Source of the DNA: Cyanophora paradoxa CCMP329
Taxonomy: Eukaryota > Plantae > Glaucophyta
Reading direction: 5' to 3'
NCBI GenBank assembly: GCA_004431415.1
Contig: QPMI01000100.1
Coordinates: 290,908 to 354,907 of the forward strand
DNA: 64,000 nt
In this document: in pieces, positions 6,301 through 64,000 of the stretch
Numbering within the stretch: position 1 is the first letter of the stretch
Layout of the letters: each line of letters begins with the position of its first letter
Notes under the pieces: generated by a model
What the model was told of the DNA's origin: nothing
What the model saw: only the letters and a program-made list of their open reading frames with translations
The model's database searches: none
Position numbers and translations under genes: made by a program

Positions 6301-7324
6301 GCGCTGAAGCGCGGGTCTGCGGGCGGAGGGCGTGAGCGAGCGAGGGGGGTACATAGACGCCGGCGGGGCGCACCGCGGAGGGCGAGGGCGAGCTGCTCGG
6401 CGGCCGCGCGGCGCAGCTCGGGATCGAGGGCCGCCCCCTGGTAGATCCGCTGGAGCTTGGCCAACTCGGAAGCCTGGAATGAGCCCGCCGGCCCGCGCGC
6501 CGCCGGTCCCTCGTCGAAATCATCGCCAGGGGCGTCCGCGTCGAGAAGAGAGCCGAAGGGGTCCCTCAGGCGCCGCCCCAGCCGCACGCGGTCCTGCAGT
6601 GGGTATGGGGTCGGCACAGCGAGGCGGAAGGGGGGCACAGGAACACACGTGGCCGTCCAGAGCGTCGAGGAAGTCAGGGGCCGCCGGCTCGGCGAGCCGC
6701 AGCGCTTCGGCCGCCTCCCGCCGGGCCCTGCCCCAAGGAATGGGTACGCGGCACAGGAAAGGAAAGAAGACAGCGGCGGGCAAAGCGTGCGCACCACTCG
6801 GCGCCGGAGAAGAGCGCGCGGGTGAGATGGCGAAGCCGATCCGGGGCGGAGAGGCGCTGCTCCAGGGCGCGCCCGAGGCGCCCGAACGGTCCCGGTCCCG
6901 GCAGCGCTGCGCGGTTCTCGGAACCGTCGTCCTCCGCGACCTCGCCCGCGGCACGGGCCAGGACCCAGGCGTCCAGCGGGCCCAGCGCCACGGCCAGGCG
7001 GCCCGCCCGGTCCAGCCGCTCGGCGGCCGCGAGGACGAGTGCGGAGGCGGCGGAGGCGGCGGCCGGCTCCAGATCGTCCAGGCCGCGGGAGAGGAGGTGG
7101 AAGAGCAGATCGCCCCCCTGGGCCACCTCCAAGAGGCGGCACCGCTGCGGCCGTCGTAGCGCAATAGGAACCGGCGGGCGACGGGCGATGGCAGTGGGCG
7201 GATGATGCGATATCGATCGTAGGAGGGTTCGGATCCCCGCCCGCGCTCGACGGGGCGACAACGATCAACGCCGAACTTCGGAAGCGCCGCCGGCCGGGGC
7301 GGCCTGCAGCTGCTCAGACGCCAT
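3350..7324 (-). pseudogene. RTTN: Rotatin-like ARM-repeat gene, C-terminal part only; probable pseudogene
   Basis: Spliced peptides LDPELRRAAAEQLALALRD, LLKNLAAGSGEAKAALL, LLRNLAFLQEAKPHILA and GALWALVYNNQK|VKVALK resemble the rotatin C-terminus. In-frame TAG at 6285-6287; no rotatin N-terminal domain seen. Both ends approximate. Confidence 0.6.
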
Positions 7325-7869
7325 CGCCGGCGCCGCCGCAGACCTGCAGAGGCGCCGGCGTAGGTACGCGGGGGCCCGGGGCTGTACGCTTGGGGGCGTT
7401 GAACTCTACGGCTACAGGAAGTAGCGCACTCACCGTGCTAGCGTCCTCGAGTCGTGTCGCCGCGCGCGTGCTCGCTGACCTGCAATCAACGGACGCTTAG
7501 CGGCTGTCTCCGATTAGGCGGGCTTGTGGCTAGATGCCTCCGCAATAGCGATGCAATTTCATGCAAACACATCGGCGGGAACCATACTCCGTCGCCTTGT
7601 TCGCCTTGTTCGCAGCTCAGTTCGTGCCTCTGATGGCTCAGCAAGCCAAAGGACTCTTGAAAGGAGCCGCTTCGTTCGCAGCTTCAGTTGCGGTATTATA
7701 CCCCTCGTTCAGAGGCTCTGAGGCTCACGCTCCGGTCACGGCGATTCGAATCCGCCGGCATCAGCGCGGCGATTCGATTTCGCGGCGCGGCGAAGCTTGA
7801 GCTGGGGCGCGGCTAGACGATGCGAGCCCTTTAGCGACCGCAACGTGCATCTAGATCTTCAAGGTGGGC

Positions 7870-9965: not shown

Positions 9966-12957
9966 TCACTTGCGGGAAAAGAAGGTGGCGATGCCGGCCG
10001 GGGCCTCCGCTCGCTTCGCCCGCTTCGGGGCCGGCGCAGGGAGCGCGGCCGCCGCCGCCTGCTGCTCGGCCCGCGCCAGCCGCTCCGCCAGGTGGAAGTC
10101 CTGTGGGGTACAGGGTACAGGATTAAGAACGAGGGGGGAGCGGAAGAGGAGGGGGTACGCGAACCGCGTGCTCCTGGAGGGCCCGCGGGTCCGGGGGCAG
10201 GCGGGCGCCGCACTGGGGGCAGGGCGCCGGCGGCGCTGCGGTCCTCTCCTCCTCCTGAGACGAGTCGACCTCGATGACGCAATCCTCGGCCCGCGAGGCG
10301 GGGGGAGGTGAGCTCGAGGCGGCCGGGGCCGGGCGGAAGTAGTTCTGGAGAGCCCCGGGAGGCGGGGGTGGGGGCGCAGCTGCAGGGGCGGGAGGAGGGG
10401 CGGGGGCGGGGGAGGCTGGGCGGTGGGGTCGGACGGGGGTGCGGGTCGGAAGAATTTGTGGAGGCCGGAGGGTGCAGGGGGCGCGGGGGGCGGGGCCGGC
10501 GCGGGGGGCGGCTGCGCGGCGGCAGCGGAGGGCCCCAGGTCGGACGGGGGTGGGATGGGGGAGGGGGAGGTGGAGGGGCGGAAGAACTGGGCGATGCCGG
10601 CGGGGGCGGGGCGGAGGGGCAGGGCGGGGGTAGTAGGAGCGGCGGAGGACGACGAGAGGGCGGGGGCGGGGGCGGCGGGCCCGGGTACGGGAGCGGACGA
10701 AGGGGCGGGGGCGGGGAAGAAAGCGCCTATCTCGCGCTGCCTCACATCGACCTCCTCAAAGCCCACGCACTGCGACCCGTACCCTCAGGAGGTGGGGGGG
10801 AAGGAGTCGGGCAGGGGTACGGGATCGGACCTGGATGGAGAGGAGGGTGACGGGGTACCGGGCGGCGCGGCGCCAGAGGATCAGAGCCGCCTTCACGATC
10901 GCGTCGCAGTCGTGCCGAACGTCCGCCTCGTGCTGCAGAAGGGCTGTACCCCCCGCCTCCTCGCCCCCCGGGGCCTCCGCCTCGCCCTCCGCCTCGGCGT
11001 CGTGCTCCGGGGCGGGCCGGGCGGGCGCGGGGCCTCCTAGGAGCTCGCGGGCGTGACAGCGGAGGCCCGATGGTACGAGGCCGGCGAGGGACTCGGTACG
11101 CAGGCCCCTCATACCCCGCCAGATCAAATTCAGCGTCCGCGGCCGCCGCCGCCACGTCACGAAGTCTGCCGCCATCGTGAGTGAGGCGCGCCGAAAGCAT
11201 TCCAAAGATCCGCGCGCCGCACCAAGCCGCATCCGCTGCACGAGCTCTCGCGCTGCGGAGCGTCAGCGGGACGGGCGGGGCGCCCGGAAACGCGTGGCGG
11301 ACCGAGGATGTGGAGCCACTTGGTGACTCCCGCGAGGGAGTACTCCTGCGGGGGATGTTGTTAGGCCTCTAGTCCCGCCCGGCCGGTCCCGAGGGCGGGC
11401 CGCGGGGTACCTCGTTAAAGCTCTTCGCGGCAAGCATAGACTGCGGCGAGCGGAGCTCTCAGAAGGGTGCCAAACGCTGGGCACAGCAAAAAGCCGAAGG
11501 AAGAGAGGGCGCGCCTTGGGGCGGGTGCGGGGTATGACGTCGGAATCGTCTACCCCCCTGACGATCCGGTAGAGCCAGGCCGCCTGCTTCTCCCCCACCG
11601 CCGCCGCCAGCTCATCCTCCCCCACAGCCACGAGGTCCCCCGCCATCTCAACCTGCGTACCCCTCAGGGGCCGGGGGGGGGGAGTTGGGGGTACGAAGGG
11701 CGCGCGCGCCTGCGGGAACCGCTCCTTGACGAGCTGGCCGAGCTTGCCCCCGAGGAACCTGTACCCCCGGTCATCGGCGAGGGCGGGCGGGTGGGGTAAA
11801 GGGAGCCGGAGAGGGGGTACCGGATCTTGGTGAGGGGCGTGCGGCCCATGAGCTCGGGGACGGCCGGGGCGGGTACGACGGTCTGCTTGTTGGGCTTGTT
11901 CATGCCGGAGCCGAGCTTGGCGATCGCCTTGCCGTGGGCGACGCCGGCGGAACACGTGAATCGCGTAGCCGCGAAGACGGCCCGCCGCAGCCGCAGCGCG
12001 ATCGCCGCGCCGACGAGCAGCCGCCGGCCCCCGTTGTCCTCCTGATCCAGCACCCCCGCCGCCCCGTACACGACGACGTTCGCCCCGGCCCACGCGCCGT
12101 CGGCGCCGGCGGGCGGTCCCGCGGCGGCGGCGGCGCCGTGCGGGGCGGGGAGCAGGGCCTCGATCTCCTCAGGGGTACGGTGCGCCCAGCCGTGCGCCCC
12201 GAGGTTCAGGAGCGCCTCGTCGACCTCGGCGCTCACGTCCATGTACGCTGCGAAGGGTTCAGGGGGCGTGCGGGGGAGGGGGTACGCGAAAACAGCGTTG
12301 GGGGTAGGGTACCCTCGTCGATGCTGGCCTTCTCGATGGGCGTGTGGGAGGAGAGGTTGCGCGCGAAGACGTCGAAGATCTCCTGCGGGCGGGATGGGCG
12401 GGTCAGCGCGGCCGCCTCGGCTCGGCTCTGCATCCCGGCCGACCTGCGAGGCCCGCCGATAGCGCTCCAGGCAGGCCTTCTGGCTGAGGCGAGAGGTCTC
12501 GCCGCCCTCGCCGCCGCCCGGGTTGTTCCCGATCGTCTCCACGTGGACGAGCACGATGTCGGGGCACAGCTCCTTCGCCTGCTCTATGCTGCAGAAGCGC
12601 GCCACGCCCTTCGCCCGCGCCGCGTAGTTCACGGCGATGAGCCCGTCCCATTGCCTGGCGTGCGAGAGAGGGAGCTCATTGGCGTGGAGCTTGACACGGC
12701 GGCACACGGAGCGCGCACCGAACTGCGAGAGGGATAGAGGGGTCCAAATTCAATCGCTTTGCCTCCACCTGCGCATAGACTGCGGCAGGGCACGCGTCAG
12801 CGGTAGGCGAACGCGTGCGGGTTCAAATTCTGGGCAGCCGCTCACTGCCGCGCGGGCTCGGTTAGCGTCTGCAATCAGCCACGTCGTGCATACAGAGCGC
12901 GCACCATGCGTCCAGATCCACATGGATCACAACGCGTCGGGTGTTGATGGAAACCAT
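9966..12957 (-). CDS. POLH: DNA polymerase eta (Y-family translesion polymerase), multi-exon
   Basis: Spliced: MVSINTRRVVIHVDLDAFYAQVE...PLAVRQWDGLIAVNYAARAKGV...LERYRRAS...IEKASIDEAYMDV...FTCSAGVAHGKAIAKLGSGMNKPNKQT...FLGGKLG. UBZ CPQCG...QEHA|DFHLA; C-terminal NLS/PIP-like PKRAKR...IATFFSRK*. One apparent frameshift or unresolved intron in the Pro-rich tail. Confidence 0.93.
12780..12905 (-). other. Candidate [D1,2] stwintron (internal intron 12904-12845 nested in the donor of an external intron)
   Basis: G|GTGCGC..GCTAAC..GGCAG|TGAGC..GCTGAC..CCGCAG; two-step removal gives GAC GCA T|TC TAT = DAFY. Confidence 0.7.
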
Positions 12958-13223
12958 GCAACGGCGCTCGCGCTGCCCTCAGATACCTCCAGAATCCATG
13001 CAGAGCCTAGCTACAACACTGCACGCTCGCGTATCGGCCCGCAGGTGCGTCTGACTCTCGCTAGGGTGCGTGTTCTGCGTCGGTTCGGGTGAAACTGCCT
13101 CTGCTGAAACTACGGCGCTCGCAAAGCACAAGCAGGCCGCTAAGCAGCCGGTGAGCGGCCAAAAAGGCGCGACGGTTTCTGGGTACCGCTGCATTCGGAG
13201 CGCTGCAAGCCGCGTCCGCTGCG

Positions 13224-14730
13224 ATGCCAAGCGGGAACGCATCGAAGCTCCCGTGGCGTGCGCCGCGCCGCGTGCTGCTGACGGTGTGGGCGCTTCTGGC
13301 GCTCGTCCTGGTATCCTCGGCGTACCTTGCGGGGCTCTTGAGCGCGAAGCGCGCGGTGCCGCAGCACGCCGCCGCGCTGCGATCTGCAGTGGTGCTCATG
13401 GCTCTTCCTCGAGGCCCGGCGCATGCGGGAGCAAGCGCTTCCAAAGTGCGTTTAGCCAGCCGGCTGCATGCGGATTCGCCAGCTGCTGAGCGCTTCGCAG
13501 GCGAACAGGCTGTTCCCAGCATCCGTAATGAATAAGGCGAAGTGCGCGTGTGACGCCCGCCCGCCCGCCTGATCGTAATCCGCATCGTATTGAACTTTCG
13601 CCCGGCCAGCTACGCTCGAAGTCATGGATACAGCTTCCGTACGTTTTTTTGCACCCTCGCGTTCGCGCGCGAGAGTTCTCTTCGACGGCGCCCAGGCGTG
13701 GACATGGAGGACGTTCCGAACGGCTGGACGAACCACGTGCGTTTTGCATGCATTCTCGCCTGCCAGGCTGCACTTCCCTGACTAGCCGCTCCCAGTGGTC
13801 GAAGGTGGGCGTTTGATGCACTTCGTGCTTTTTTAAACGCTCACATTCTCCACCACGGCACAGCTCTACGCCTTGCGTAGAGCGGCGAAAGAATTCCAGT
13901 GATGCCCATGCAGAAGCTAGATCAGCTGTGTCTCTGCTCAGCCTTAGCGCAGATGGACTCTCTGGAAGGATGTGGACGTGTTTATAACCAATCAGACGAC
14001 AACTATCGACGAGATGCTGCAGATACCCAGATCAAAGGGCCTCGATCCTGACAGTGTGCTTCTGGTTGCTCCCTGCCTCTTTCCCGACTCCCGACCCAGT
14101 GATCACGGGCATTGCAGTGCTGGTTTGCTGCTGCGATAATGTGGAAGGCTCGGGCCAACTCAAGTTCTTCGTGAGTGGAGGTGAGAGGGCGTTGTAAGGA
14201 GAAACACAACAGATGCCAATTTTGATGCCGATTGTGATCAGAGCCTAACCAGCATGTGAACACTGGCAGCTTGCTTTTGCGCTCATCGCCTTGGTAAACA
14301 GATCTCTATCTGTACTATACATTATGCACGTGGATAACATTGCCTCCTCCTCATCTCAGGACGTCCGCCTTTCTGAATGAGGTCCTGGCCGTCGGCCCTA
14401 TTCCTGGGCATGTATGGAATGACCAGGTGGGCATCAACATACCAGCATCCGCACTCAATTACAATTGAATGCGCATTAGCTGAATTCATCTTGATACAGA
14501 TCAGCATCATCCATGTGCTCGACCGCATGCAGCGGGAGCAGCATAACGTCACAGCACATGTCTTCTGTGGCAAGGAGCTTGCACAGCTCTGGCGATACGC
14601 GGACGGCAGCAGCCCTCCGGGAACATTCAGCGAGCACTATGCAGGCAACTTCTGCAAGGACTTGGCGTGCATCGATCAGCTCCTACAAAGAGCAGTAGAG
14701 GGCCTGAACACCTCCAGATCAGCCCAGTGA
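13224..14730 (+). CDS. Type II membrane glycosyltransferase, GT34 (GMA12/MNN10-like)
   Basis: N-terminal TM (VLLTVWALLALVLV); spliced motifs MNKANYARSHGYSF, WSK, WTLWKDVDVFITN (DxD), VNTGSLLLRSSPWTSAFLNEVL, WNDQ, FSEHYAG. Confidence 0.8.
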
Positions 14731-14976: not shown

Positions 14977-15894
14977 CTACTGCAGGGAAGCCACAATGGA
15001 TTGCACAGCCATGTAGGTCCTGGGGCAAAGCTGCGGGCCGGAGTCGGGATCCAGTCTGTCGGCCAGGGCAAGGAGATCGTTTTTATCTGTAGTGGCTTCA
15101 GAGAGCATGCAAAAATGAGAACATTGAAGGGTGTGCATCACCATCCACGTCCTCATACGTGGCCCGAGCAAGGCTGCAGGGCACGCCAGCTCGCTGCAAG
15201 GCTTCGATCTGCTTTTGCCCGGTCTGTTCGCAACTCCACGGGATGTCGCGGAAGACTTCCGATGAACGGGGCTTATCGCTGCAGGCCGGGGAAAGCGAGA
15301 GAAGAACGTAGCTGCAAGGAATCACTGCATCAGCTGCAGAAACACGACAGATTTGTAGAGAGCGGACACGAACCCGCCATCACACGCTTTTGCGAGGAAA
15401 GCTTTGGGCTCTGCGGTCTGAACCACCTCATCAGCTTCCTCAAGCAGGGACCTGGGAATGTCTGGCAGGTCCTGCGAAGAGGATGGCCAGTCATGCGCCT
15501 CGACGCGTACGTAAGAAAGCGAGAGATAACGCACGCTTCCAATGAAGATCGAAGCCCGTCGGGAGGCTACAGGGTGCTCCAGCGCGGCCTGCAGACGGTC
15601 GCCGAGAGATCCGCCCGCTAACTGAGGAACCAGATCCCAGCGCGTAGACAGCTCCGGGCGCAACTCGAGCAGAAGTTCCCGCATCCTCGACTCGTCGCCG
15701 GAGTAGTAGAGGTACAACGCAATCCGCTCGCTGAGCGTCGCCGCCAGGCGCTCAAGGAGGTCAAGCAGCGCGGCCCGAGCGAAAGTCGCTGCGTGCTCCG
15801 GTCCAATCCCGCTGGCCAGGCGAGTTTTGCATGCTCCAGGAAGCGGGTACTTCGCGACAAGGAACAGCGCGGTCCGCGCGGCCGGCCCGGGCAT
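14977..15894 (-). CDS. DUF2064 / TIGR04282-like (CofC-like, GT-A fold) transferase, 4 exons
   Basis: LFLVAKYPLPGACKTRLA, PQLAGGSLGDRLQAA, IFIGS|DLPDI, ACDGG|YVLLSL, FRDIPWS, YEDVD|DKNDLLAL; canonical GT-AG introns. Confidence 0.85.
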
Positions 15895-16269
15895 GCGACT
15901 GCTGGCGCTGCAGGCCCGCACGCACGTCAGCGGCGCTTTGGCCAAAGGCGCATACGAGAGCATGTACTTATACGCACGTGTAGAAGCAGCGCAGGGCTCC
16001 TCACTGAGAGCTGCGTCAGTCTGACCGCCGTACTCTGGCTGCTTGTCGCGCACCGCACGGCGTCGGGTCAGGCTGCGATGCGGCACTGCAGCTGGCTCGT
16101 TCGGCCTCTCCCCTACTTACACCCCCTCGGGCCTGGTCCTTTGTACCCCTGGTCCTGGTCCTTGTACCCCGGCCCTTGTTTCCTATTGTACCCCCTTTAC
16201 CCCTCTCTTTGCCGCTCCCTGCGATGCAGCAGCTCCGTAGGCGTTGAAGGTGTGGTGCAGATTCTGTAC

Positions 16270-32763: not shown

Positions 32764-34579
32764 CGTCCCTGTGCGAGGTCGCCGCTGCTCACGTCCGTTC
32801 CCGCGGGGGCCAGGGCCCTGCAGCTGTCGACGTCGCCCACGGGGTCGCGCGAGCGAAACAGCCGGAAGGCTGCCTCATGCAGGTCGCGCCGTCGAAAGGC
32901 CATGAAAACTCGGAGAGGGCCCTGTTCCAGATCGACCTCCGCCGGTCGCCGGGGCCAGCACTGCGGGGCTGGCATGGGGCCCGGCCCCCGCCGTGGGGCG
33001 TCCCCGACCGCCCACCGTGGCACAGGTACTGCGCCCTTCCGCGGGGCCGAGAGGCACCGGGGGAGAAACGGCTGAGCGGAAGAGCTCAGGGGGTGGGCCG
33101 TCGGGAGGGGAGCGTTGGGGAACCGTATGCAGGGTAAGAGGGATCAATTGGAAGGGGCGGGGGTCGCACGCGCTAGAACTAGACGTGGGGTGCACGCGGT
33201 GGGGTACACGGGGTGAGGACGTGGCCATGGGGGGGGGGGACTTCGCGGGGTACGCGGTGGGCACTGGGCGGCCAGGGGGTCTTGGGGCTGGGCCAGCGAT
33301 AGCGGGGGGGAACCTGGGGCGGAGCCGACGGGGCCGGGCAGGCGACTTGCTGGGGGGGGCAGCGGCGGCCGGGGAGGCCGCTTCATCTTCTTGGGAGGCG
33401 TTGGCGGGGGACGGGAGAGCCAGGGGCCTCGGGCGGGCGGAACCCCTCAGGCTCGGACCCCGCGGGGGAGGTCGCCATCGGCTCCTGCAGCCCTAGTGGC
33501 CCGGGCCGTGGGACGGGACAGCCATGGCGGGCCCTATCGGTCGCGGCGGAGGACGGGGACTCGGCGTCGAGGGCGGGCGGAGGCCAGTGCGTCGGACTGT
33601 CGCTGGACACGCGTGCTCTGTGCCGAGGGCGCGCCGCTGCGCATGCGGAAACGGGTCAGGCCTGGCTTGCCTAGTGCGGGAGCAAGAGCGAGTGCGCGGT
33701 GGTGGTACGCTGCGTGTAAGGTGCGTCTCTCTCCGGGCTCGGGTGCCGGGCGTACGCGTAAGCTCTGCGGCCAGCGGGATGAGTCGCTGTGGTATGTGCG
33801 GGCGCGACGCGCGCGCGAGGGCTGCAGTCCGGGGATGTTGAGCAGGGCGCGGGCGAGTCCCGCCACGTTCGAAGCGGTGGCGGGAGACCATCGGCCGGCA
33901 ACGGCCGGTCTGGGAGCGTGAAGGAGGGCGCCGAAGGTGAGTCCGGAGAGAGAGGAGGACAGTGCGGCTGGACGCTGCGGTCGGGCCAGAACCGCGCAGC
34001 GCAACGCTCCTTCAACGCGTGGTTTCGCGCTTCGATGAGGAAGTAATTATTAATCTGCTAATAACTGATTATTAACTAGTAATAATATTTTTTCAATGAT
34101 TCTTATAAAGTCATCACTGATGGCCGGGCATGGCCCGCTCTAGGAATCAGTCTATGCCAGGATCGATAGCGCCCCCCAATGGCCCCAATTTCGATAGCCC
34201 CCGAATTCAATCGCCCCCGATGCATATTAATGCGCGATTGGGGCCCATCTTGAGGGATCCAAACCGTGCACGCACTACCCCTGTAAACACTACCCCCCTG
34301 TAGGCAGCCACGCGTACGGGTGCACGTGCATGCACGCCCATACACAGATCTACGGCCTATCCGACGGCGATCGCGATTTCGATCGCTTTAGCTTCGCGAA
34401 GTTGCAATTACGCGAGCTTGGGGAGCCTGGAGCTGGTCGATCGATACTTATTACGTATACGGACAGCTAGCGCTTACAGCGAAGGTGGCGAACGGGGCGA
34501 GCCGCAAGGGCGGCTGAAGTTGAGCGCCTCGCGCAGCTTCGAACGCCTGCGCATTTCCACAAGAAAACGTCGTGATACG

Positions 34580-37500
34580 ATGGATTCCTTCCCAGGTCTG
34601 TCCTGTGTCTCCTTGTTTCAGTGCGCTCTGCGTGACTCTCGTTAACGTTGCCGCAGGCTACGTAACCACGGAGGCGAGCCCTCTGCAGGCTTCGCATCCC
34701 CGCGCGCGAGCCTCCTGACGCTTGCGCGTTTCCAGGTGCTCTGCGAGCGCCGCAACAGAATGCTGATCCGGGCCGTTCGCGCGTCGGATGGTTCGCACCC
34801 GCCATACCGCCGCGGAATTGGCTGACAACGCTGCCCAGGCATGGCCGTAGTCCTCAAAAAGCTCAATGAAGAATTCTAGTGCGTGGTCCCGTGTCAAATC
34901 CTCGCTTTCTGCCCCTGAAGTCTTCCGCAGCGATTACCCGAACCTCCAGGCGCCCGCCGCCGCCGCCAGCCGCAACCCCGCGTTTCTAACAGTCGCGTCC
35001 GTCGCAGAAACTCAAGCGCGAGTTCAGCATCATGGTTCGCCCCAGTGGAGGCGCCGCCACGCGGGGCTCACGGGGGCGGCGCCTTCGCAGACTGTCGTGG
35101 CGGGGCCGTACGTCATGAAGGCCTACGAGCTGGCTGTATCCTCGAGGACGGCCGCGATTGTCATGGAGGCTCGCGCCCCGACCCCCCGCCGGCCTGCGCG
35201 CGTTGCGCGCGGGGGTCGAGCGGGCCGGGGGCGCAGGACATCGGGGGCCGCTCGCTGGACAAGATCGTGAACGGGAAGCCGATGCCGCTGGGGATTTTCC
35301 TGCCCCTCGCCATACAGCTCACGACCGCGCTCGGCGTCGTCCACGGCGCTAACGTCGTCCACAGGGACGGTCCGAACCCGCCCGCCTCCGATCGCGAGAC
35401 TCCGCCCCCGCCGCCCCCGCCCCGCGCCGGCTGAGCGCGCACGGGCCGGGGGGAGCAGTGAAAGCGGGGAACGTGATTGTGAACCTGGAGAACGCGGAGG
35501 AGAGGCGCCTGCAGCTTGCCGACTTTGGCCTCGCCGGCTACATCCAGGACTCGTACACGCAGAGCGACATGGAGGGCAGGCGCGCCCCCCCCCGCCCCGC
35601 CCCGACCAGTCCCGCCCGGCGCCCCCGCCGACGCCCTCCCCAGCCTGGCGTACATGGCGCCCGAGCAGACGAAGCGAATCCACTGCGTCGCGAACCAGCG
35701 CTCCGACCTCTACAGCCTGGGCGGTGCTTCCGGGACTGCGTGCAGATCGCGGTGCAGCCTGCACGCGCGCCCCTCACGCCCCCCTCTCTCCCCGCAGTCA
35801 CCTTCTACCAGTGCCTGGTGGGGCACCTCCCGTTCACGTGCGCCCCCCGCCACCCCCCTTCCCCCACCCCAACCCTCTACCCACCCCTCCCACACCTTTC
35901 CACTTCTGTTCACGTGCGCCGCCCGCGCCAACGGGTTGCGCCGGCAGCGGAGACTCCCTGTCGATCATACACGGGCACCTGGCCCGCAAGGCGACCCCCG
36001 TCTGCGTGATCCGGTGCGCGGGCCGGGACGGCGCGGCCAGGCCGGGGCCACCCTGGGCCGACGCGACCGCGCGCAGGCCCGAGATCCCCGAAGTCATCAG
36101 CGCCATCGTGGAGAAGGCGAGTGTAGTAGAGAAAAGCAAGGGGGAGGCTGCGCTGGGCTGACGTCGACGGGCGCGCAGCTGATGGAGAAGTCTCCGGAGG
36201 ACCGCTACCAGTCGGCGTACGGCGTCCGGAAGGACCTCTCGAACTGCTACGCGCAGCTCCGCTCGGGGCCCGGCATCATCAGCACCTTCAAGGCACGCCC
36301 TCTCGTCCCGCGATCGCGACGGGATGCTCGCGCTCGCTCACTCTCGGGGCAGCTGGCGTCGCGGGACTTTCCCTGCACGCTGCAGCTCTCGACGCGGCTG
36401 TACGGGCGCGAGCGCCTCGTCGACCAGCTCGCCGCCGCCTTCGTCGCCGTCTTCGGGTCCCTCGACGAGATCAACCGCAAGATCGAGCGGCGCAGCGCCC
36501 CGGGCCACAACCCGGGCCACCGCCAAAACGGCCCCTCGAGCTCGCCGGACGCCTCGCAGGACTCCTCCTCGGCGGGGCCCTCGCGGTCGAGCTCGGTGCT
36601 CCGCGGCGCCGGTGCGCTGGAGCCCTCGCAGCCGGCGCGGCGCGGCGTGCTCGTCATCCGCGGCGTCTCCGGCATCGGCAAGACCGGCCTCGTTCTCCGT
36701 TTCGTCCAGGTGGGCGGGGAGGGCCGGGACGCCGACGACGGGAGGGGCGGGCGCCGAGCGGGGCGCGCGCGCGCGCGCAGGACGTCGCGACGGAGCTGCC
36801 GGTTGTCTTCCTGCGGGGCAAGTACGACCACAACACGTGCGCGTCGCGCCCCTACAGCGCCATCATCGCCGCCATCATCGGCCTCGTCCAGCAGGTCCTA
36901 CCCGCTCTTCCCTCGCCCCCTTCCCCTCTTCCCCCTCTCACACCCGCGCAGCTGCTCGCGGATAACGAGCGGCTGCTCGCCGTGCAGCCGCGCATCGTCG
37001 CGGCGCTCGGCGAGAACGCCTCGGTCCTCGTCGACCTCGTCCCGGAGGCCAGGCACCTGCTGGGCACGGCGGCCGCGGGCGTCGAGCTCGCGCCCGTCCC
37101 GCCGCTCCCGCCGGCCGAGACCGCACTCCGCCTCACCACCACCGTCTGCCAGCTCCTCGAGTCCCTGTACCCCCTCGTCGTCTTCCTCGAGTGCGCCCCA
37201 TTCCACCCTTAAGCTTCTCGCCCTCGACGTCTCTTGAGGGATCCGGACCCCCCGCAGCGACATGCAGTGGGCCGACACCGCATCCCTTAAGCTCGTGCGC
37301 TGCCTTCGCAGCCCTTTCCTCCCGCCCCCGCCCCCGCCCGAGCCGCGCCGAGCCGCGCCGCGCGCCGCCCAGATCCGCCGCCTCGCCACCTGGCCCTCCA
37401 TGGAATGCCTCCTCATCTGCGCCTGGTGCGCCCGTCCCTGCCTAGCAGCGCCCGTTGCCGCGGGCCTTGTCGAACCGGCGGGAGCGGGCAGCCGGAGCAA

Positions 37501-40500
37501 CGAGGTGCGGCCGTCGCACCCGATGGCCCTTGCCATCGACGAGATCCACTCCAGCGGCGTCCCCATCTACGTGCGCCCTTCTTTTCCTCCGCTCGCCCTC
37601 CCCGAGATTGGCGCAAGGCTTGCACGGCTCCACGATTCGGAGATCTAGAGCTGAACGGGCCCCTGTTCGGTCTAGGCCTCCGAATCTCGCACGTCTCGTT
37701 GGATTCCCGGCGCTGACGGGGCTCTGCTGCGGGGCGGGGGCGGGGGCAGGACATTGACGTGGGCCCGCTGAGCGTGGAGGACGTGAACGGCTTCCTGGCG
37801 GCGACGCTGCGCTGCGAGGCCGCCGCCTCGGACGAGCTCGCCCGCCTCATCCACTCCAAGACCGACGGCAACCCCTGTGCGCCACCACGGCCCCCCGCCC
37901 ACCCCCACGCCGCCCTCCTCTGCCCTCTCCGCATACATCTCACCCTGCCCCGCGCAGTCTTTATCCGCAGCTTCCTGGACACGCTCTATAGCCAAGAGAA
38001 GATCAAGATCGACCACCAGACGGGGGCTTGGCACTGGAACGTCTCCGACATCGAGCAAATGAAGTGAGCCGAGGCGCCCCCTGCGGGCCGTTCCTTTCTT
38101 TCCTGTATCCCGGCCCGGAGGACCGACCGGCTGACGCGCTCCGGCACGGGGCTCGGGGCGCAGCTACACGGACAACGTGGTGGACATGCTCGTCTCGTAC
38201 ATCTCGCAGCTCTCTCCGGGGGCGCAGGAGACACTCAAGCTCGCCTCGATGTTCGGCAACGCCTTCAAAGTCCCCCTGCTCGCCGTCACCGCCGCCCGGC
38301 CCCAGGAGGCCATCATGGTGCGCCCCTCAGGATAGATGGGTTTCCGAATTTCCGCCGTTTTCCCGTGTTATTCCACTTCTTCCCTCTCCGCCTCTACTTC
38401 GCCCCTCACCCGCGGGCCTGGGCGGCGCAGTCGGCGGTCTCGGAGGCGATCCGCAAGCGGCTGATCGTCTCCGTGGGCGCGGAGACGTACCGCTTCGTGC
38501 ACGACCGCGTGCAGCAGGCCGCCGCCCGTGCGCCTTCACAAGACCCGCTTGTTTCCTGTCCTTTCTTTTCCCTAACAGAACCTGCTTCTCCTGCTCCCCC
38601 TCCTCCTAATTCCAGTTCTGGTGGCGCCCGTGGATCTGCCGGCGCTGCACCTCCGCATCGGACGGCGGCTCCTGGCGGCGCGCTCTCTCGTCGTAGAGGC
38701 CCCTTCCAAAATGCGGGAAGCCCGCGGAGACGAGGAAGAGGACAACATTTTCGAGGCGCGCGCGCGCGCGCGCGTGCCGCGCCGGCGCCGCTGAGGCGCG
38801 CCGGCGCCCGCCCACCGTGCCCCCACCAGGTGGTGGCGCACTACAACCGGGGCGCTGCGCTCATCGACGATTCCGAGGAGCGCTGCCGCCTGGCGGAGCT
38901 CAACCTGCAGGCCGGCGCAAAGGCCTTCACCTCCACTGCCCACGAGGCCGCCCGCTCCTACTTCGAGGTACACGTACCCGCCCCCTCTTCCCCTCGGGCC
39001 CCGCGCGCCCCGCCCCCTCCTCACCGCGCCGCCCCCGCACCAGGCCGGCGTCCGGGCGCTCTACGGCCTCCCCGGGGGCCCTCCTCCCGCGGACCGGGAG
39101 CCGCAGGAGGGGGCACCCGCGCCCCCCGAGCAGCGCCCGATTCGGCACGCCGAGCTGCGCGAGCGGCAGGGGGACCTGGACCTCGTAGATGCGTCGCGGG
39201 GCCTGGGCACGCGGCTCCTGCTGCGCCTCGCGGAGTCGGAGTACCTGTGCCAGAACTTTAGGGCGGCAGACGAGCACCTGAGCTACATCGAGGGGCGCGC
39301 GGCGTCGCTGCGGGAGAAGCTGGACGTGTTCCGGCTGCGCGTCAACATGCTCTCCACCGCCAACCGCTTCGCGGAGGTCGTAAAGCGTGCAGAGGCGGTC
39401 GTGCGCGAGTTCGGGATCGAGATCGAGCGGGGCGAGGACGGGACCGTGCCCCAGGCCCGCATCGACGAGGCGTACGGGGCCATGTGGCGCGCCTGGGAGG
39501 CGCGGGGAGTGGATGCCAACCTCGACGAATTCGTCGCCGGCCACCCCGTGCGCCCATGCCAGCCCCGCCCCGCCCCGCCCCGCGACTGTCGCCCGCCGCG
39601 CCCCTTCCCCTGCGCCCCTCATCTTCCCCCAGGACCAGGACGACGAGTTCACGTTGCTCCTCTTCGCCCTGGTCGAGGTCATGGGTGCGATTCCCGCCCT
39701 CTCCAGTGGATCCGCGTTGCGCTGAGCCTGGCTTGACGTCCCCCCGCCGTCGCCGCAGCGGTTATGTACCTTTCGAGTGCGCGGCCCGCCCGCTCCGCCC
39801 CGCCCCGTCGCTGACGCCCCGTGCAGCGATGTTCGGGCCGTACCAGGTGCTGGCGGCGAGCCTCGTGCGGCTCTGCATAGAGCGCGGGGGCAACGCGGCG
39901 GCCGTCTCCTGGTACGCCTACATGGTCTTCATCCTCGCCGGCATCCGCAAGGACTACGAGGGGGCCGTCCGCATGCGCCGCCTCTGCCTCGCCGTCATCG
40001 ACCGCGAGGGCGCGTGCACCTCCGACTTCCTCCGGTAACCCCCCCCCCCCCCCCCCCCCCAACCCCCCCATCCCTATCCCCATCCTCGCGGGGCGCAGGG
40101 GCCGCGTGCTCGTGTGCGCGCTCTGCTCCTTCCCAGTGGGCTCGAACTGGCTGGCGGGCATCGCGCCCATGGCGGAGGCTGCGCGGCTCTCGCAGCGGGC
40201 GGGGGACCTCAACAACGCCCTCTACGCCATCAACCAGCAGCTCTGGATCTCCTTCTTCGCCGGCGTGCCCCTCGGCGACATGCACGAGACCAGTGCGCCG
40301 CCCCCGGCCCCGCGCCCCCGGCCCGCTGGCTCCCTAGGCCTCCCCCTGTTGGCTCCGCCCCCCTCACGCCGCGCCCCGCGCGCGCAGTGGTCGAGTTGAA
40401 GCCCTTTGTCAGCAAGTGCGTGAACCTGGAGCTTGAGGTCTCCTTCGACGCCGCCGCGGCGCACGTCCGCCTCCTCGAGGCGAGCCGCCCCGCCGCCTCC

Positions 40501-43500
40501 GCACCGCCGCCGGTGCTGGCTTAGGTGGGCGGGCGGGGGCCCCCTGGCGGCGCAGAGCGGGCAGAGCGACGCGGACGCGATGGTCGCGGGGGCGGACATG
40601 GGGCCGGAGATGGCGGCGCGGGGCCCCTACTGCCGCTCGGCGTACCTCTCCTTCCGCTTCGTGGCCCTTGTTGTGCTGGACCGCCTGCGGGAGGCGGCGG
40701 CGCTGCTGCCGAGCTTCCGGGCCGCGGTCGGCGACACCCCCGGCGTCATCTTCAGCTTCGAGGAGCCTTTCCTCCAGGGTCCGCGCGCACGCCCCGCCTA
40801 GGCCTCCGCCCCCCTGGCGACGCGCACGCGCGCAGGCCTCGCGGAGACGACGTGCCGGCTGGGCGTGTGGCCGGGCCCCGAGGCGCCGGCGCCGCTGGGG
40901 AGGGCGAGCGGGCGGAGGCGGCGGCGCGCGCGGCGGCGCTCGTCGCGCGGCTCGAGGAGTACGCGGATCACTGCGCCGACTTCCGCTGCCGCGCCCTCTT
41001 CCTCGACGCAGAGCGCGAGCGGGCGCTGGCGGGCCCGACGCCCCCCGCGCCGCCCTCGGGCCGCTGCTCGGGCGCTACGAGGCGGCGGCGCGGGCGGCGC
41101 GCGACTCGCAGGCGCTGCAGGTCTCGGCCCTGGCGCACGAGCTCGCCGCCTCCCTCTGCCTGGCGGCCGGCGTTCGGGGCGCCGGGCTGCACTACCTGAA
41201 GGAGGCGGTGAAGGACTACAGCGCGTGGGGCGCGCGCACCAAGGTCGCGCTGCTGCTGAGCCAGCACGCGGAGCTCCGGGACGCCCTCGTGTACTCCAAG
41301 GCCCCCAGGAACGCTTCCACGGGCTCCGGCTCCCGCTCCAGGGGGGGGGCAAGTCCTCCGACTCGTCCGAGCGCCCGGCCGCGGCGCGCTCTCCGGCCGC
41401 CGCCGCGGCGACGGGCGGCGCTTGCTCGGGCTCGGGCACGAAGACGGGGTCGGGCTCGGGGGCGCCGGCGAGCGCGCCGCGGGCGACGGCGTCGACGGTG
41501 GACATCCTCACCGTCGTCCGCTCGGCGCTCGCGCTCGCAACGGAGTCGGACCTTGACGCCCTTCTCTCCAAGCTCATGGTCCGGCCCCGCCCGCCCGCCC
41601 GCCCCGCCCGCCCGCCTCCTCCTCAGCGCCGCCGCCGCCCCCAGCTCATCGTCATGGAGAACGCCGGCGCGGTGCGCGTGCGGCGCGGCGCGGCGCGGCG
41701 CGCGCGCACACACACACACACGCTCGCGAAGCTGAGGCGGGGCGGGGGCGCAGACGGTGGCGCGGCTGGTGCTGGCGCGCAGCAAGCACTGCCGGCACGA
41801 GCAGGCCCCGGCGTCCGCGGGCCTCTCCTCCCTCTTCTGCGTCCGCGTCGAGGGCGAGGTCGGCCCCCCCCTCCCCCCCCCCTCCCCCCCCCCCCCCCCG
41901 CCCTCGTCTCCTCCCCGGCCGGGGCGCGCTGAGACCGCACGCCCCCCCGCGTGCTCGCTCTCGCAGGTTGATATGATGCACCTGCACTCCGAGGGCGGGC
42001 GGGAGGCGGAGGGCGGGGAGGGCGGGCGGCGGGCGGCGGTGGACATCCGCTGCGTGGACAAGCCGCTTGCGCAGTACCGCAACGTCTCCCACGCCATCGT
42101 GCAGGTCCGCGCCTGCGCCCGCGCCCGCCCCCGGCCCCGCCCGGCCCGCCGCCCGGCCGGCCGCCCCGCGGCCTCTCCTCCTCCGATCCAATCCGATCCG
42201 ATCCGATCCGATCCGAGTCGGGGCCCGCCCCCTCCCGCAGTACGTGATCCGGACCGAGGAATACGTACTCCTCGACAACGCCTGCGCCGAGGTGCGCACC
42301 CGTACCCGCCCGCCCGGGGCACCGCCCCGCCCCGCCCCGGCCAGCCGTGGCGCCTCTCGCGAGGCCCCCCCCTCCAACGCCGCGCAGGGCAACTTCGTGT
42401 CGTGCGGGCACGTGCAGCGCAACGCCCTCCGCTCCGTCCTCTGCGTACCCGTCGTGCGCCCCGCCGCCCCGCCCCGCCCCGCCCCCGCGCCCGCGCCCCG
42501 CCCGCTCTCCGGTGAGCTCCAGCGCAGATGCACCAGCAGAAGGTCATGGGGGCGCTGTACCTGGAGAACCGCTTCATGGCGGGCGCCTTCAGCCTCGAGC
42601 GCGTCGAGCTCCTCCAGCTCCTCGCCGCCCAGGTGGGCCTCGCCCTGTCTCTGCGGCCCCGGGGGCCTGATCATGTGGCGGGGCGCAGCTGGCGGTCTCG
42701 ATGCTGAACGCGACGCTGCACGAGGACCTGCGCCTCTACAACCGCGAGCTCGAGGTCAAGAACCGCTCCCTCGCCATGCTCGGTCCGCCCCGCGCGCCCC
42801 CGCCGCCCCCCTCCCTCCCCGCCGGGCGGCCGCGGGCCCTATCGTGACGGCGGCGGGGCGGCACGGCAGACCGCGCCAAGGACACGCTGCTAGCGAACAC
42901 GAGCCACGAGCTGCGCACACCCTGCGGCAACATAATCGGCCTCTCGGAGCTGCTGCTCGACTCGGGCCCGCTCACGGAGCAGCAGGCGCAGACGGCGCGG
43001 ATCATCCACCAGTCCGCTGAGCACCTGCTGCGCATCATCAACAACATCCTGGACCTCTCGGGCCTCGAGTCCGGGGCGGTCAAGCTGGAGCGCGTCGAGT
43101 TCGACGTCGCCGGCGTCGTCAACGACTGCGTGGCCGCCTCCTCCGTCTCCGCGTACAAGAACGGCCTCGAGATCGGCTCCCACATCGACCCCCGCTGCCC
43201 GCTCCGCGCCATGGGCGACCCCGTGCGCTCTCGCTCGCCCCCTCCACCCCCCCTGCCCCGTCCGACCGGCCCCGCCCCCGCCCGCTCGGCCAGACGAGGC
43301 TCAAGCAAGTCATCATGAACGTGCGCCCGCCCGCCTCGCCGCGGGCCCCCGCCTGGCCTCGCCAGACCCGACGCCGGCCGCGCAGCTGGTGTCCAACGCG
43401 ATCAAGTTCAGCTCGCATGCCCGCCCCGACGGGCACGTCCTCATCTCCGTCGAGCTCGTCGCCGACGTCCGGTGCCGCCCCGCCCCGGCCCCCGGCCCCC

Positions 43501-45549
43501 GAGCCGCGCCCCTCCCGGAGCTCCGTCCGAATGGGCGGGCGGGCGGGCCGCGGGGCGGCAGGACGGAGTTCGTGCTGCGGTTCCAGGTGGAGGACACCGG
43601 GGTAGGGATCAAGCAGGAGGACCTCCCCAAGCTCTTCCAGCGCTTCTCGCAGGCCCGCCCGCCCCCGCCGGCCCCCGCGCAGGCGCCTCCGGAGCGTCGC
43701 CCTCTGACGTCAGAGGCCGGCGGGGCGGGGTACCGGCGCGCAGGTGGACAGCTCCTTCTCGCGGCGCTGGGAGGGCTCCGGCCTCGGCCTCGCCATCTCG
43801 AAGACGATCGTCTCGCACTGCGCCGGCCAGGAGCCCGAGAGCGCCGCCGCGCACGGCGCAGGCACCATCTCTGTCCAATCCGACTTCGGCAAGGGGTCCG
43901 CTCCCCCCTCCCCCTCCCCCTCCCCCCTCACCTCCGACTCCCCGGCCTCGCGTGACGCGGCGCCAGGTCCACGTTCTACTTCACCGTCGCGATGGCCTAC
44001 GCGCCGGACTCGCGGCCGCGCGCCCCGCCGGCCCTCCCCGACTCCGGGGGCCCCGGCGGGCGCCCCGTCGCCGCCGTGCTCGCCCGGCCCTTCGTCGCCG
44101 GCCTGCTGGGCCGCTACCTCGCCGAGGCCGGCGTGGAGGCGGCCCCCTGCGGGCGCCCCGAGGAGCTCGCCCCGCTGCTGCGCCGCATCGCCGCCGAGGG
44201 CGCCCCCGTCTCCTTCGCCGTCGTCGACGGGAGCGTCGACGGGGCGCTCGCGCTGCTCGAGGCGGGCCCACTGGCGGGGCCCGGCGCCCCGCCGGCCCTG
44301 GCGGAGCTCCCCGCGCTCGCCGTCCTCCGCACCGAGTCCAAGTTCGACAAGGACCGCTGCCCGAGCCGCGTGGCCTGCCTCTACAAGCCCGTGCCCCAGG
44401 AGCGCTTCGCCCGCGCGGTCGCCCGCGAGCTCGCCCGCCGCGCCGCGCCCCAGCACGAGCGGCCGGCCGACGAGGGCGCTGGGGCGGGGGCCGGGGTCGG
44501 GGCCGGGGCGGAGACGCGAGGCTCGCGGAAGTGCAAGTGGCCAGCGGGGAGCTCGTCCTCGTCGGAAGACGGGCTCCCCGCGGAGGGTTCCAAGGCGCGC
44601 GGCGGGCTCGGGCTCGGGTCCGGGCGGCCCCTCTCGAGCGGGCGGGCCCCGGCGGCGGGGGCGGCCCCGCCGAGAAGCGCCGGCGCACCACAGACATCCT
44701 CGTGGTGCGCGGGGGCGCCGGCGCGCCCCGCCGCCGCCGCCGCCGCGCGCCCTGACGCCCCGGGGCGGCGCAGGTGGAGGACAACCCGGTCAACCAGATG
44801 GTCGGTGCGCATGCACGCTCGCCCGGCCGGACCTGGGCCTAGGCCCAGGCGTAGGCCTCTGCCCGCGCCCGCGCCCGCGCCGCTCGCGGGCGTCGGCGAC
44901 GCGGGGCGGGGCGCAGTGCGAAAGCTGCTGGAGCGGGCGGGCCACCGGGTGGAGGTCGCCGAGGACGGCTTCGCCGCCCTCGAGCACGTCCGCCGCCGCG
45001 CCTTCGGCCTCGTCTTCATGGGTCCGCCCCGCCCCGTCCCGGCCCCTCCCGCCCTCCTCTGCTGCTCCCGCCTCGCTTCGCGCGGCGCTCACACGCGCGC
45101 GCGCGCGCGCCGGCAGACTGCAGCATGCCGCGGTGCGACGGGTACGAGGCGACGCGCCTCATCCGGGCCCTGGACGCGGAGCAGGGCACGCGCACCGTCA
45201 TCGTCGGCCTCACCGCCCACGGTGCCCGCGCCCGCCCGGCGCCGCCGCCCCGCCCCGGCCCGGCCCGGCCCCTGACGGGCCTGACCGGCGGCGCTCAGCG
45301 ATGGCCGGCGAGCGGGAGAAGTGCCTGAGAGCCGGTATGGGTGCGCGCTTGCGCGTGCCGCGCCGCCTCGCCCCGCCCCGCCTCGCGGGGCCAGCCGGCT
45401 GACCCTGCGGGGCAGACGAGTACCTGAGCAAGCCGGTGAAGAAGGAGGACCTGCTGAGGATGGTGGAGCGCCGCGCCGCGCAGCTTGACGAGCCCGGCGC
45501 AGGCCCCGCGGGGGCCCGGCCCGCCGCCGCGCCCGCCGAACCGGAATGA
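34580..45549 (+). CDS. Hybrid multi-kinase, copy 1: Ser/Thr kinase - AAA ATPase - helical repeats - GAF - HisKA - HATPase - REC-like - REC; ~45 introns
   Basis: VVLKK, VHRDVKAGN, LADFGLA, GSLAYMAPEQ, SDLYSLGVTFY, LMEKSPEDRYQSAYG, LYGRE, P-loop GVSGIGKT, FLDDMQWAD, KTDGNPFF, FVHDRVQQAA, GALYLEN, H-box NTSHELRTP, NLVSNAIKF, EDTGVGI, GSGLGLAI, VEDNPVNQ, FMDCSMPRCDG, GLTAHA, YLSKP. Confidence 0.92.
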
Positions 45550-45949
45550 CGCCCCCTAGGCCTCGCCCCGCTTCTTCCTCGATGTCGAGGGAGAGTGCAG
45601 TGGCGGGTCCAATTTTCCACTTTTTTCTACAAACTACTCTATGAATACATGCTCTTCTACAAAATACGTATATATACACGATGAATATACGTATATACAT
45701 GCAGGAATGACGCCCCCACGCGTATATACGTACGCCCCGCCTCTTCCGAATTCGAACTTGGAAGTTCTTCGAATTCGATGTCAATTTTGCAAGCCTGGAG
45801 GGCCGGCCGCGGCCGCGGGGGACTCATATAGATGAAGACCCTGCAGCTGTTTTTGATCATGACCCTGGGGATCCTGACGGCGACGGACTGGCCCGAAATC
45901 CCATGAGACAAGCAGGGGGGCTCCGCCCCCCCGCACCCCCCCAGTGTTA

Positions 45950-47700
45950 TTTAGGAATCTTTGATTTCTTGTTGTCTATTCTTCTTCGTCTATGTACTAC
46001 GGTACTACTACTTCTACTTATTAATTGAACAAAGAATGAGAATGAAGTACTAAAGTTGTGAAGACAGAACAGAAGAAGCTGAAGCACTGAACATAAAGAA
46101 CAGAACAGATCTGAGTGCATGAAAGATGTAGAAATTAAACACTGATCATGTAATCTAGAAACAATGCACGAGATGCAATGTAGTCCAAAGCTAGGCTTCA
46201 TCATTTATGGTTTGTCATGAAACATAATGCTTTGCAATTGGTGTTTAATTCTTGGCTGGCAAAGAAATTAAAGGGCGATTTGATATTCTTAGCTATAGCT
46301 TTGGCCAGGAAGATGAAAAGAAGAGCTAAAGCACTGAACAATTGCAAGAAGTTTGAAATTGCACACATGAATCTCTTGTGGTTCAATCGTATTACAAAGA
46401 ACGAAAATGAAGCTGAAGCACTGAAGAAGAGAGCATTTCAGAACAGATCCAGAAACAATGAAGTGATCACAAAAACAATACAAAAGAAGCACATGCAATG
46501 TCTTTCAGGTTTGATCATTTATGTTCTAGATCTGTCATCAAACATCGAGTTTTGGTGTTAAATACTGGCCATGGCTGGCAAAGCAAGGGCAATTCTTAGC
46601 AGGAAAGTGGGCAATAAGCTTGAACGTTAACATTTATTGCAGCAGTGATATACTGTCCAAGTCCCTGTAGCTTTGTACCCCTGTACCTCAGTCTGCCTGT
46701 ACCCCCAATACACCACCTTGCCAGCTATATATATAGCTATCTAGCCTGGCAATACATTGCAGCACTGATCATGAACAATTGCAAGAAGCTTAAGAATTGA
46801 ACACTTCAATTGACAATTTGGCAAAAACAACCTGGCAAGGTTGTAGAAGAATTGATCATGAACAAGTCAATCATTGATCATTTCATTTCATGCATGTAAC
46901 ACGCAACAATATTTTATGCATGCAATGATGCCATGATGAATAATGCATGCATCATGATCAATATAAAGATCTAGATGCCACTGCAGCTGGGCCATCTAGA
47001 AGAGAATGTTGTTTGTTTTGTTAAACAAAAAATGCAAGTACAATCTCTTCAATTTCAATTTGGCAAGTTTCTGTTTTGTTTGTTGTGAATGTGTGAACGT
47101 TGTGCTAGTGTTGTGTTTTTATTTTTTTGTCTTGTGTTGTTGTTTGTACATTGTCAAAGTTGTGGAACATATGCATTTCTTTTTGTTGTACCGTAGTACA
47201 TGCCAAGATGTTTAATGTATTATTTATTGTTTGCCAAGAATCAAACCGGTTCTGAATCGGCACTGAGCAGTCAAGTGCACCACAGCACTTCAGGAAGAAA
47301 AAAGGAAAAAAGGGACTTTCCATTGACAGAACTGCCGGATACCCAATTTCAGCCACAAAACTCCACTCTGTGGCAGATCTTCCCACTTCATACTTCCAAG
47401 CTCACTGGCATAAGCAGCGGCTGCCGCTACTTTTTTTAAGAAGTCACAGAGTCATACATCACTCAGTGACTTTTGCTTCTCATGTGGAGCCTGTCTCAGT
47501 GACCACAGTGAGTCAAGGCAGCACTGGCAGCCTTCAAGTGCATATCAAATTGAGTATACCAATGAGAGCGACAACTCAACCACTGGCCTGCGATTCACAA
47601 GTTCCCCACTTACCAAACATGCTGGCACGACTGTTGGTAGCCCAGGCTGGACCAACCATGGAGTGCACTCCACTCAGTGAGTTTGACTGTTCGCACAGTA
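45950..47700. other. AT-rich, CpG-poor island; possible decayed repeat or transposon
   Basis: Abrupt composition shift, many TG/CA, internal repeat TGAACAATTGCAAGAAG (~46335 and ~46772), no convincing ORF. Confidence 0.45.
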
Positions 47701-50700: not shown

Positions 50701-52361
50701 TGGGGTACGCCTTCGTCTTCGGTCGCCCGAGGCCTAGGTGCGGCGAACCCCCGGAAACTCTACCGCGCCTCCCTTAGGCCCGCCCGCCCCGCAGGGCCGG
50801 GATGGAAGACTTGAACCGCCGAACCCCTCTTTCATCGCTTCGGCGGGGGTACAGACGTATGTCGAACCCCCGGAAACTCTACGGCCCCTCCCTAAGGCTC
50901 GCCCGCCCCGCAGGTCTGACCGGCGCGGGCTGGGATGGAGGGGGAAGCGGAGAAAACACTGGCATTTTCAAGTCGAATTAGTACGGGGAAAACGCGGGCA
51001 CCTGGCAACACTAATTTGACTCGAAACCGGGCACCGGGCGGCCATTGGTCGAGAGCTCTCCCGAGTTGAGTCAATCAACTTGACTCGGAAAAAGGTTTGT
51101 ATGGCGGAAATCGCGCCATAGAGCCATAACTCGTAGCGTGAGTTGTCTTCGAAATTTTACTTGATTGATCATCATGACATGTCCTGCCTGATTCCCCGGC
51201 TGGCCTGATAGGGAGCAGGTCAGTACGGGAAGGTCAGGTTTGTTTCCTGTATGAGATCCTACGTCTCAAACTTGCATTCTTTGATCCTCTGTCTCGGGTC
51301 ACCGGGTAGGGTCTCCATACGGGTTGTTATTTGCTTTTTTTGAGAGCAATCATTGAATATGTTTATCACCACCCAGACTCGGTTTCGAGTCCTGGGAGTG
51401 TCTTTTACTTGCTCTCTCTCTCTCTGAATTATGCTCGATTGTGGGTTGTAGGCCGGGCGCCGTTTACATGCTTCCACGCTGTAGACGTCCAGGTTTTCTA
51501 TAATTACCTCGGTGGTCTCTAAACCTTTCTTGGTGTACAGTGGTGGTGTACCCTTGAATTGGAGTTACCCCCCCTCCCCCCTCGAATTCATGCTCGATCA
51601 GCTCGCGAGCCCGCCGTCAGGAGCGGCGCGGGGCCCGCCGGCGCTCACAGCCGCTGAGCGCGTGGAACATCGCAGTTGCAAGCCCGATGACGTCGACCCC
51701 TCAGCCATGGCCAGGTTCCTCGCACCCGGTGACCGTCGGACCATGGCCAAGCCCGGGCGGCCCTGCAGCTAGCGCTGCCGGCGCCGGCTGCGTCCTCTGC
51801 TCAACCCTTGTCAGGCCCCGGGCCCGGCCGGCGGAACGCGGTGGCGCACAGGGTCGCTACGACGTCGCCGAGACTCGTCGTCTGAGCAAGTGCGGCACAC
51901 GCGCCTGCGCCGCCCGGCGGAACAATACATGGTCTGATGTGAGCCGCTGAGCGTCGGTACCGCCTCGCAGATATCGAATTGCAAGCTGACCTAAGGGCCT
52001 TCCTTCCGAAGTTCCCCCAAGGCCGATCAATTTCGAGCGATCATGCCCTACCTTGTCCGTACACGCCCCTTGGCCCACAGTGCCGGAGTAGATTGTCCGG
52101 TAATTCACAATTAAGGTCGCCCCCCCGGCCCGCCCGCCACGCCACCCCACCCGCCTGCCTCGCCACCTGCACCCCGCCCGCCTCGCCACCCCGCAAGCCT
52201 CGCCCCCCGGGCCCGCCACCCGTCTCGCCTCCCTGCCCATTCATATTCATAGTGTACTTATTCATAGTGTAGTTTCTAGAAAAAGTTTATTCGGAGCCGC
52301 CACCGCAATCCCCCTTGACATCGAGGCCCTGAGGAAGAAGCGGGGCGCGGGGGCGTCATGA

Positions 52362-53064: not shown

Positions 53065-53097
<33 letters not shown>

Positions 53098-63616: not shown

Positions 63617-64000
63617 TATCACGACGTTTTCTTGTGGAAATGCGCAGGCGTTCGAAGCTGCGCGAGGCGCTCAAGTTCAGCCGCCCTCGCGGCTCGCCTC
63701 GTTCGCCACCTTCGCTGTAAGCTGTCCGTTCGCCACCTTCGCTGTAAGTCGACGTCGGTGGGACGGCAGCGATCAAGTTAGGCAGCTGCAGGCTGCGAGC
63801 CCCTAGGCGGCTGGGCCTGGATATGCATGGAACGACATTCGGCCTTTCAAGCTGATTTTGACCAATCCGCGAGCTTTTGACTTGGGGGGTGACTTAAGCT
63901 TAGGGTAGAACGCAAATTCTGACTCTTTGTGGGTACGGCGAGCCTGAACGAAGCGCACCGTACCCGAGGCGCCGGCGCCGCGACGTTCGGATCCGAGCCA

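Follow-up and report, generated by a model that had tools for sequence, protein, structure and literature searches.

The closest described counterparts of the intervening sequence analysed here are the [D1,2] stwintrons, which the primary studies report from ascomycetes (PMC12403724, PMC9024468, PMC5639578, PMC5587772, PMC7138796), the group in which they are also placed by a review (PMC7385547). In the cases from Aspergillus (lipS and dhaoS), Helminthosporium and Hypoxylaceae/Xylariaceae, an internal U2 intron separates G1 from T2 in the external donor (PMC5639578, PMC5587772, PMC9024468 and PMC12403724), and the same arrangement was found in the sequence described below. Alternative splicing between the [D1,2] and [A2,3] modes requires a 3′ exon that opens with a G (PMC5587772). 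The literature searched, which was short of most subscription journals, yielded no non-fungal case of a donor-split spliceosomal intron, and stwintrons are unmentioned in the intron passages of the Cyanophora paradoxa genome paper (PMC6704402).

The intervening sequence was found in a minus-strand DNA polymerase eta (Pol eta) gene of the glaucophyte alga Cyanophora paradoxa, within a stretch of 64,000 nucleotides that was analysed as a whole and is called the window. The Pfam IMS domain was detected on the gene and the UBZ and POLH HhH domains on protein P0001, the best PDB matches of the gene product were Pol eta, and the named homologues agreed; together with the IMS_C domain and the DxDxF motif, these place the product in Y-family Pol eta. 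Database searches used single exons or retrieved protein identifiers as queries, and joined translations served for frame checks. An earlier note, made from the letters of this DNA, had assigned the gene to Pol eta and supposed a non-fungal host, and both proposals were borne out, the latter by the 100% match of exon 3 to the EukProt protein tig00000402_g246.t1 of Cyanophora paradoxa. The coding part of exon 1 (12906–12957, minus strand) consists of MVSINTRRVVIHVDLDA followed by the first base of the Phe codon, and the leader upstream of it is transcribed to at least 13175, with RNA contigs covering 12906–13175. This leader contains an upstream ORF of six codons (MDSGGI then stop) at 12999–12979 on the minus strand, which is in frame and ends 21 nt before the start codon. 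Exon 2 (12719–12779, minus strand) reads TC TAT GCG CAG GTG GAG from its first base and encodes YAQVEAKR, and it is supported by an RNA contig piece and by an orthologue match. The remaining part of the gene (9966–12718, minus strand) has ten ordinary introns and was checked with RNA down to 10700. In the same RNA contigs these ten introns measured 50–74 nt, eight being GT-AG and two GC-AG.

Several other features of the window were recorded. A partial copy of Pol eta positions 10641–11576 lies at 76–1012 with 86% identity, and it carries introns and small indels and is without the twin intron. This copy accounts for all 11 variant letters in the contigs mapped on the Pol eta region, and as the RNA contigs carry its letters it seems to be transcribed. 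The segment 1688–2378 adjoins the partial copy and copies 6676–7372 at 92%. Long intron-rich paralogues at 34472–45647 (plus strand) and 52259–63722 (minus strand) form an inverted pair with 89–95% identity; they have a HisKA domain and a weak AAA_16 match and are probably hybrid histidine kinases. A Kinesin-3-like gene with FHA, Kinesin_assoc and KIF1B domains and GC-AG introns runs on the minus strand from 16389 to beyond 19500, and a DUF2064-like gene (E 1e-6), whose family is described as bacterially conserved, occupies 15322–16086 on the same strand. The region 46001–48000 is a low-GC island (42% vs about 70%), and the ORF at 46217–46531 within it gave no Pfam match.

Read on the minus strand, the last bases of exon 1 are GCA T, the T being 12906, and exon 2 begins TC TAT at 12779; the 126 nt between them (12780–12905) form a complex intervening sequence with apparent GG..AG ends, placed in phase 1 within the Phe codon of DLDAF. 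The single base at 12905 was assigned as G1 of a split outer donor; it is present in a gapless DNA contig and gone from mature RNA. The inner intron of 60 nt (12845–12904, GTGCGC..GCTAAC..GGCAG) has the donor GTGCGC at 12904–12899, the branch motif CGCTAAC at 12867–12861 with its A at 12862, and the acceptor CAG at 12847–12845. The remainder of the outer intron (12780–12844, TGAGC..GCTGAC..CCGCAG) is 65 nt long, or 66 nt with G1, and contains the TGAGC that completes the donor GTGAGC, the branch motif CGCTGAC at 12802–12796 with its A at 12797, and the acceptor CAG at 12782–12780. Each of the two branch motifs is 17 nt away from the end of its intron, against a median of 19. The full 126 nt is thus the sum of 60 and 66 nt, each within the range of the gene's ten other introns. 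The coordinates and the 1 + 60 + 65 nt parse given in the earlier note all hold in the sequence, and the two lengths that it had called typical of this genome, 60 and 66 nt, agree with the measured range. All the sequence-level features of a [D1,2] stwintron were observed, namely a start with G plus a canonical donor, an AG end, a normal inner intron, and a rebuilt external donor followed by its own branch and acceptor. Furthermore, as its 3′ exon opens with a base other than G, the unit belongs to the strict [D1,2] type; an [A2,3] alternative route was rejected as impossible since the first base of exon 2 is T.

The splicing of this region was monitored by mapping contigs on 10700–13400. They came from one DNA run (X1) and three RNA-like runs, of which X16 and X17 share a sample and X18 belongs to a different sample and study. 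A joint between 12779 and 12906, which skips 126 nt and reads CT..CC on the plus strand and GG..AG on the minus strand, was present in X16, X17 and X18, as the earlier note had predicted for the final junction. The joint had zero shift ambiguity, with no letter fitting both sides. Ten further introns were seen in the contigs of these runs, and therefore the runs are RNA. The DNA run did not have the joint, and one of its contigs covered 11797–13400 with no differences or gaps; because this contig spans the region in that way, the GG is not an assembly error. The two Gs that it carries at 12904–12905 exclude the plain GT-AG intron that the earlier note had named as the outcome fatal to its parse. 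The fully spliced form was the sole form in the contigs of all three RNA runs, which are assembled contigs of depth 11–16 and drop rare forms. Depth was 0 over 12793–12883, a value that cannot show absence in contigs so shallow, and neither a 12905–12844 joint nor a lariat was found among them. We infer the order of splicing, since the intermediate in which 12905 is joined to 12844 was unseen at this depth. In addition, at positions 11265 and 12085 each of the three RNA runs has single contigs whose long ends are loose, and these are probably GC-rich look-alikes from other genes.

The joining of 12906 to 12779 restores the catalytic motif DLDAFYAQVE. When all one- and two-intron GT/GC-AG routes were enumerated, none yielded DLDA-F-YAQVE; the in-frame routes insert or delete residues or replace the Phe by W, C or some other residue. 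In-frame GT/GC donors or a micro-exon were therefore rejected, as none yields the conserved motif and the RNA has a different join. The spacing D-x-D-x-x-[YF], with exactly two residues from the second Asp to Y/F, was kept in every fetched homologue with a parsable motif (180/180), the second of these residues being F in 166/180. As this spacing is kept in all 180, purifying selection needs exactly the 12906–12779 join. Splicing from 12904 to 12780, which is the 125-nt missplice, was found to shift the frame as the earlier note had stated, with a stop at codon 158, and the unspliced and half-spliced RNAs stop at codon 32 and codon 25, respectively. Because every incomplete or wrong product stops early, all six signals are kept in place by selection on Pol eta. 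The protein of the published model, tig00000402_g246.t1, begins MWIWTHV-YAQVE and is without DLDAF and the catalytic aspartates. The start ATG of this model at 12923 (minus strand) does not lie in the reading frame of the RNA-supported mRNA, and the model fits a 125-nt GT-AG splice translated from that other ATG. A simple ab initio gene finder made the same 125-nt GT-AG error, and other genes with such units may be misannotated as truncated.

The strength of the signals was scored with matrices derived from 157 introns that were predicted ab initio in the window, excluding the twin unit, of which those within Pol eta are RNA-verified. Against these 157 introns the inner intron ranked at the 94th percentile for its donor, the 83rd for its branch and the 38th for its acceptor, and the outer intron at the 48th for the rebuilt donor CAT|GTGAGC, the 94th for its branch and the 64th for its acceptor. 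The donor needed for one-step removal, CAT|GGTGCG, scored −12 bits, which is under all 157 training donors. The internal cassette, comprising the branch, the AG and the rebuilt TGAGC donor, scored 19.7 bits, a value that was reached by 22/20000 dinucleotide shuffles (p about 0.001) and by 0/20000 chimeras of real intron interiors, the pool for the latter being only 5.2 kb; the 33 other predicted introns of 100–160 nt scored at most 13.7. When both strands of the window were scanned for nested parses, with donor types [D0] to [D5,6], this site ranked at the top with 45.5 bits vs 38.6 for the next, and no convincing second stwintron was found within the window. Among 180 predicted introns in the window, 54 (about 30%) start with GC, GTGCGC is the commonest donor, and the branch consensus is CGCTGAC. 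No association was observed between a non-G at −1 and strong intronic U1 pairing that would compensate for it (p 0.78).

The GG..AG junction in RNA, the GG in DNA and the normal signals of both constituent introns together uphold the stwintron parse of the earlier note, and the unit is very probably a [D1,2] stwintron spliced inner-first. The major spliceosome would handle such a twin intron under intron definition. At the first step, the donor at 12904 would be paired with the branch at 12862 and the AG at 12845, the nearest strong pair, and the 60-nt inner intron would leave, by which G12905 would be fused to T12844 and the new donor CAT|GTGAGC created. At the second step this donor would be used with the branch at 12797 and the AG at 12780, and the 66-nt intron would leave. 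The net product, which is the 12906–12779 join seen in RNA, has the metal-binding motif DLDAF of Pol eta restored. The removal of the 3′ unit at the outset would take the G of the inner AG and lead to a dead end; because G12845 belongs to both units and the first base of exon 2 is T, the inner-first order would be forced.

Removal of the 126 nt in one step as a non-canonical GG-AG intron, with the internal signals being a coincidence or a relic, was considered unlikely. It agrees with the end product alone being seen, with the relaxed donors of this genome (about 30% GC among predicted introns) and with the rare GG-AG sites reported in human (PMC4176328); however, the GG donor fits 1/6 of the intronic U1-pairing positions, with a near-perfect 94th-percentile GT donor 1 nt away, and it scores under all the training donors. 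One-step splicing explains neither the double length nor the internal cassette (p about 0.001), nor why a strong GT donor goes unused; GG is used by 0/10 of the other RNA-checked introns of the gene, and no GG-AG intron was reported among about 60,000 fly introns (PMC4528330). Cyanophora paradoxa has minor introns (PMC10639083), and a U12-type intron was rejected because the RTATCCTT donor and the TCCTTRAC branch are both absent. The least probable of the explanations weighed, and a very remote one, is an artefact or a non-spliceosomal event, such as a surplus G in the assembly, a wrongly placed joint, template switching or the deletion of a G from a GT-AG product. With one G fewer the sequence would indeed be an ordinary 125-nt GT-AG intron whose signals are excellent, but the gapless DNA contig carries the GG and the joint is identical in two studies. 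Since zero letters fit both sides of the joint, there is no repeat for template switching, and the fold of the whole unit is unremarkable (z −0.07 to −0.58).

A further alternative is that both routes work or that the unit is a regulated bottleneck, in which frequent 125-nt missplicing, or a second step slowed by a hairpin around the outer branch, would send part of the RNA to decay and so tune Pol eta, for example after UV. The early stop in every incomplete or wrong product is compatible with such control, and fungal stwintrons are documented to undergo missplicing in which one G is retained (PMC12403724). The outer branch A is, in addition, predicted to be paired within a hairpin at 12790–12818 on the minus strand (pair probability of the branch A about 1.0), in an outer intron that folds better than its shuffles (z about −2.6), a lead by which the use of the outer 3′ site might conceivably be delayed and missplicing suppressed. 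Against this, the hairpin came to light post hoc and is a weak lead, similar pairing of the branch A being present in 3/31 comparable introns, the contigs of the three RNA runs included no missplice or retention form, and seven distant orthologues do not share the intron position. The earlier note's suggestion of a control point for translesion polymerase expression thus gained no support, the fully spliced form alone being present in these contigs. We therefore regard the regulated bottleneck as improbable, if a little less so than one-step removal, and the twin intron is most likely a locked-in evolutionary accident rather than a regulatory device.

The intron position was absent in the orthologues of Coccomyxa, Vitrella, Spizellomyces, Cryptococcus, Galdieria, Marchantia and Ectocarpus, and an ancient position was rejected on this ground; a search for orthologue DNA from other glaucophytes returned none. 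An origin by tandem duplication was also rejected, since the likeness of the inner and outer introns does not exceed that of 28% of random intron pairs, with p 0.025 for the likeness of the last 24 nt and p 0.15 for the last 30 nt. A propagating sister family was rejected as well, since within the window no copy was found, the symmetry of the unit gave p 0.70, and no inverted repeat of 6 nt or more occurred near its ends. Because the position is absent in the seven orthologues, the two units are not notably alike, and sister copies and symmetry are lacking in the window, we infer that, within the glaucophyte lineage, an intron was gained inside the donor of another one and split its G1 from its T2. 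The twin intron most likely arose independently of fungi.

An RNA-supported stwintron in a glaucophyte implies that such introns originated independently in a distant supergroup, and it lends support to strict intron definition in Cyanophora paradoxa, for which the genome paper gives about 25,800 genes with 9.2 short introns each (PMC6704402). We suggest tentatively, and on balance with some doubt, that stwintrons evolved independently in Archaeplastida and that Cyanophora paradoxa holds a hidden, possibly large class of them misannotated by gene finders. If so, donor-splitting nested splicing would be a general result of strict intron definition and intron gain in small-intron eukaryotes and not a fungal speciality. 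The locus also suggests that some catalogued non-canonical GG-AG introns may be two canonical ones, and algal and protist RNA-seq offers a cheap test of how far nested splicing has spread, through GG..AG junctions that are about twice as long as the modal intron.

Recursive splicing at AG|GT ratchet points proceeds through zero-length exons, the first splice regenerating the donor of the second, and the Cyanophora unit shares this regeneration of a donor by the first splice. It differs from recursive splicing in that its internal site is AG|T, with G1 coming from upstream of the inner donor, and in its size of 126 nt vs many kilobases; because of this internal site and the upstream position of G1, stepwise removal would be obligatory in the proposed scheme. 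The intron-within-intron arrangement and obligatory order are also known from the group II/III twintrons of the Euglena plastid, which are organellar and of the self-splicing type, and the same nesting from U2/U12 twintrons such as that of Drosophila prospero, in which two spliceosomes are used alternatively (both treated in PMC5587772); in contrast to these, the Cyanophora unit is nuclear and made of two U2-type units. The human CPSF3 GG-AG intron (PMC4176328) presents the same apparent GG..AG ends in RNA alignments, but the CPSF3 site is tissue-specific, whereas the Cyanophora junction is the sole form seen and would hide two canonical introns. Unlike a case with a demonstrated splinter, the Cyanophora unit is known from its final join and its signals, with the intermediate deduced from them. 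It lacks the internal symmetry and near-terminal inverted repeats of the Xylariales sister stwintrons and has no sister copies in the window. With the ascomycete [D1,2] stwintrons it has in common the one-G overlap, the short introns, the clear branch motifs and the net GG..AG ends, and in both a one-step missplice would keep a G and shift the frame. It differs from them in its glaucophyte (Archaeplastida) host and in following that host's own donor code, in which GTGCGC is the commonest donor and many introns start with GC.
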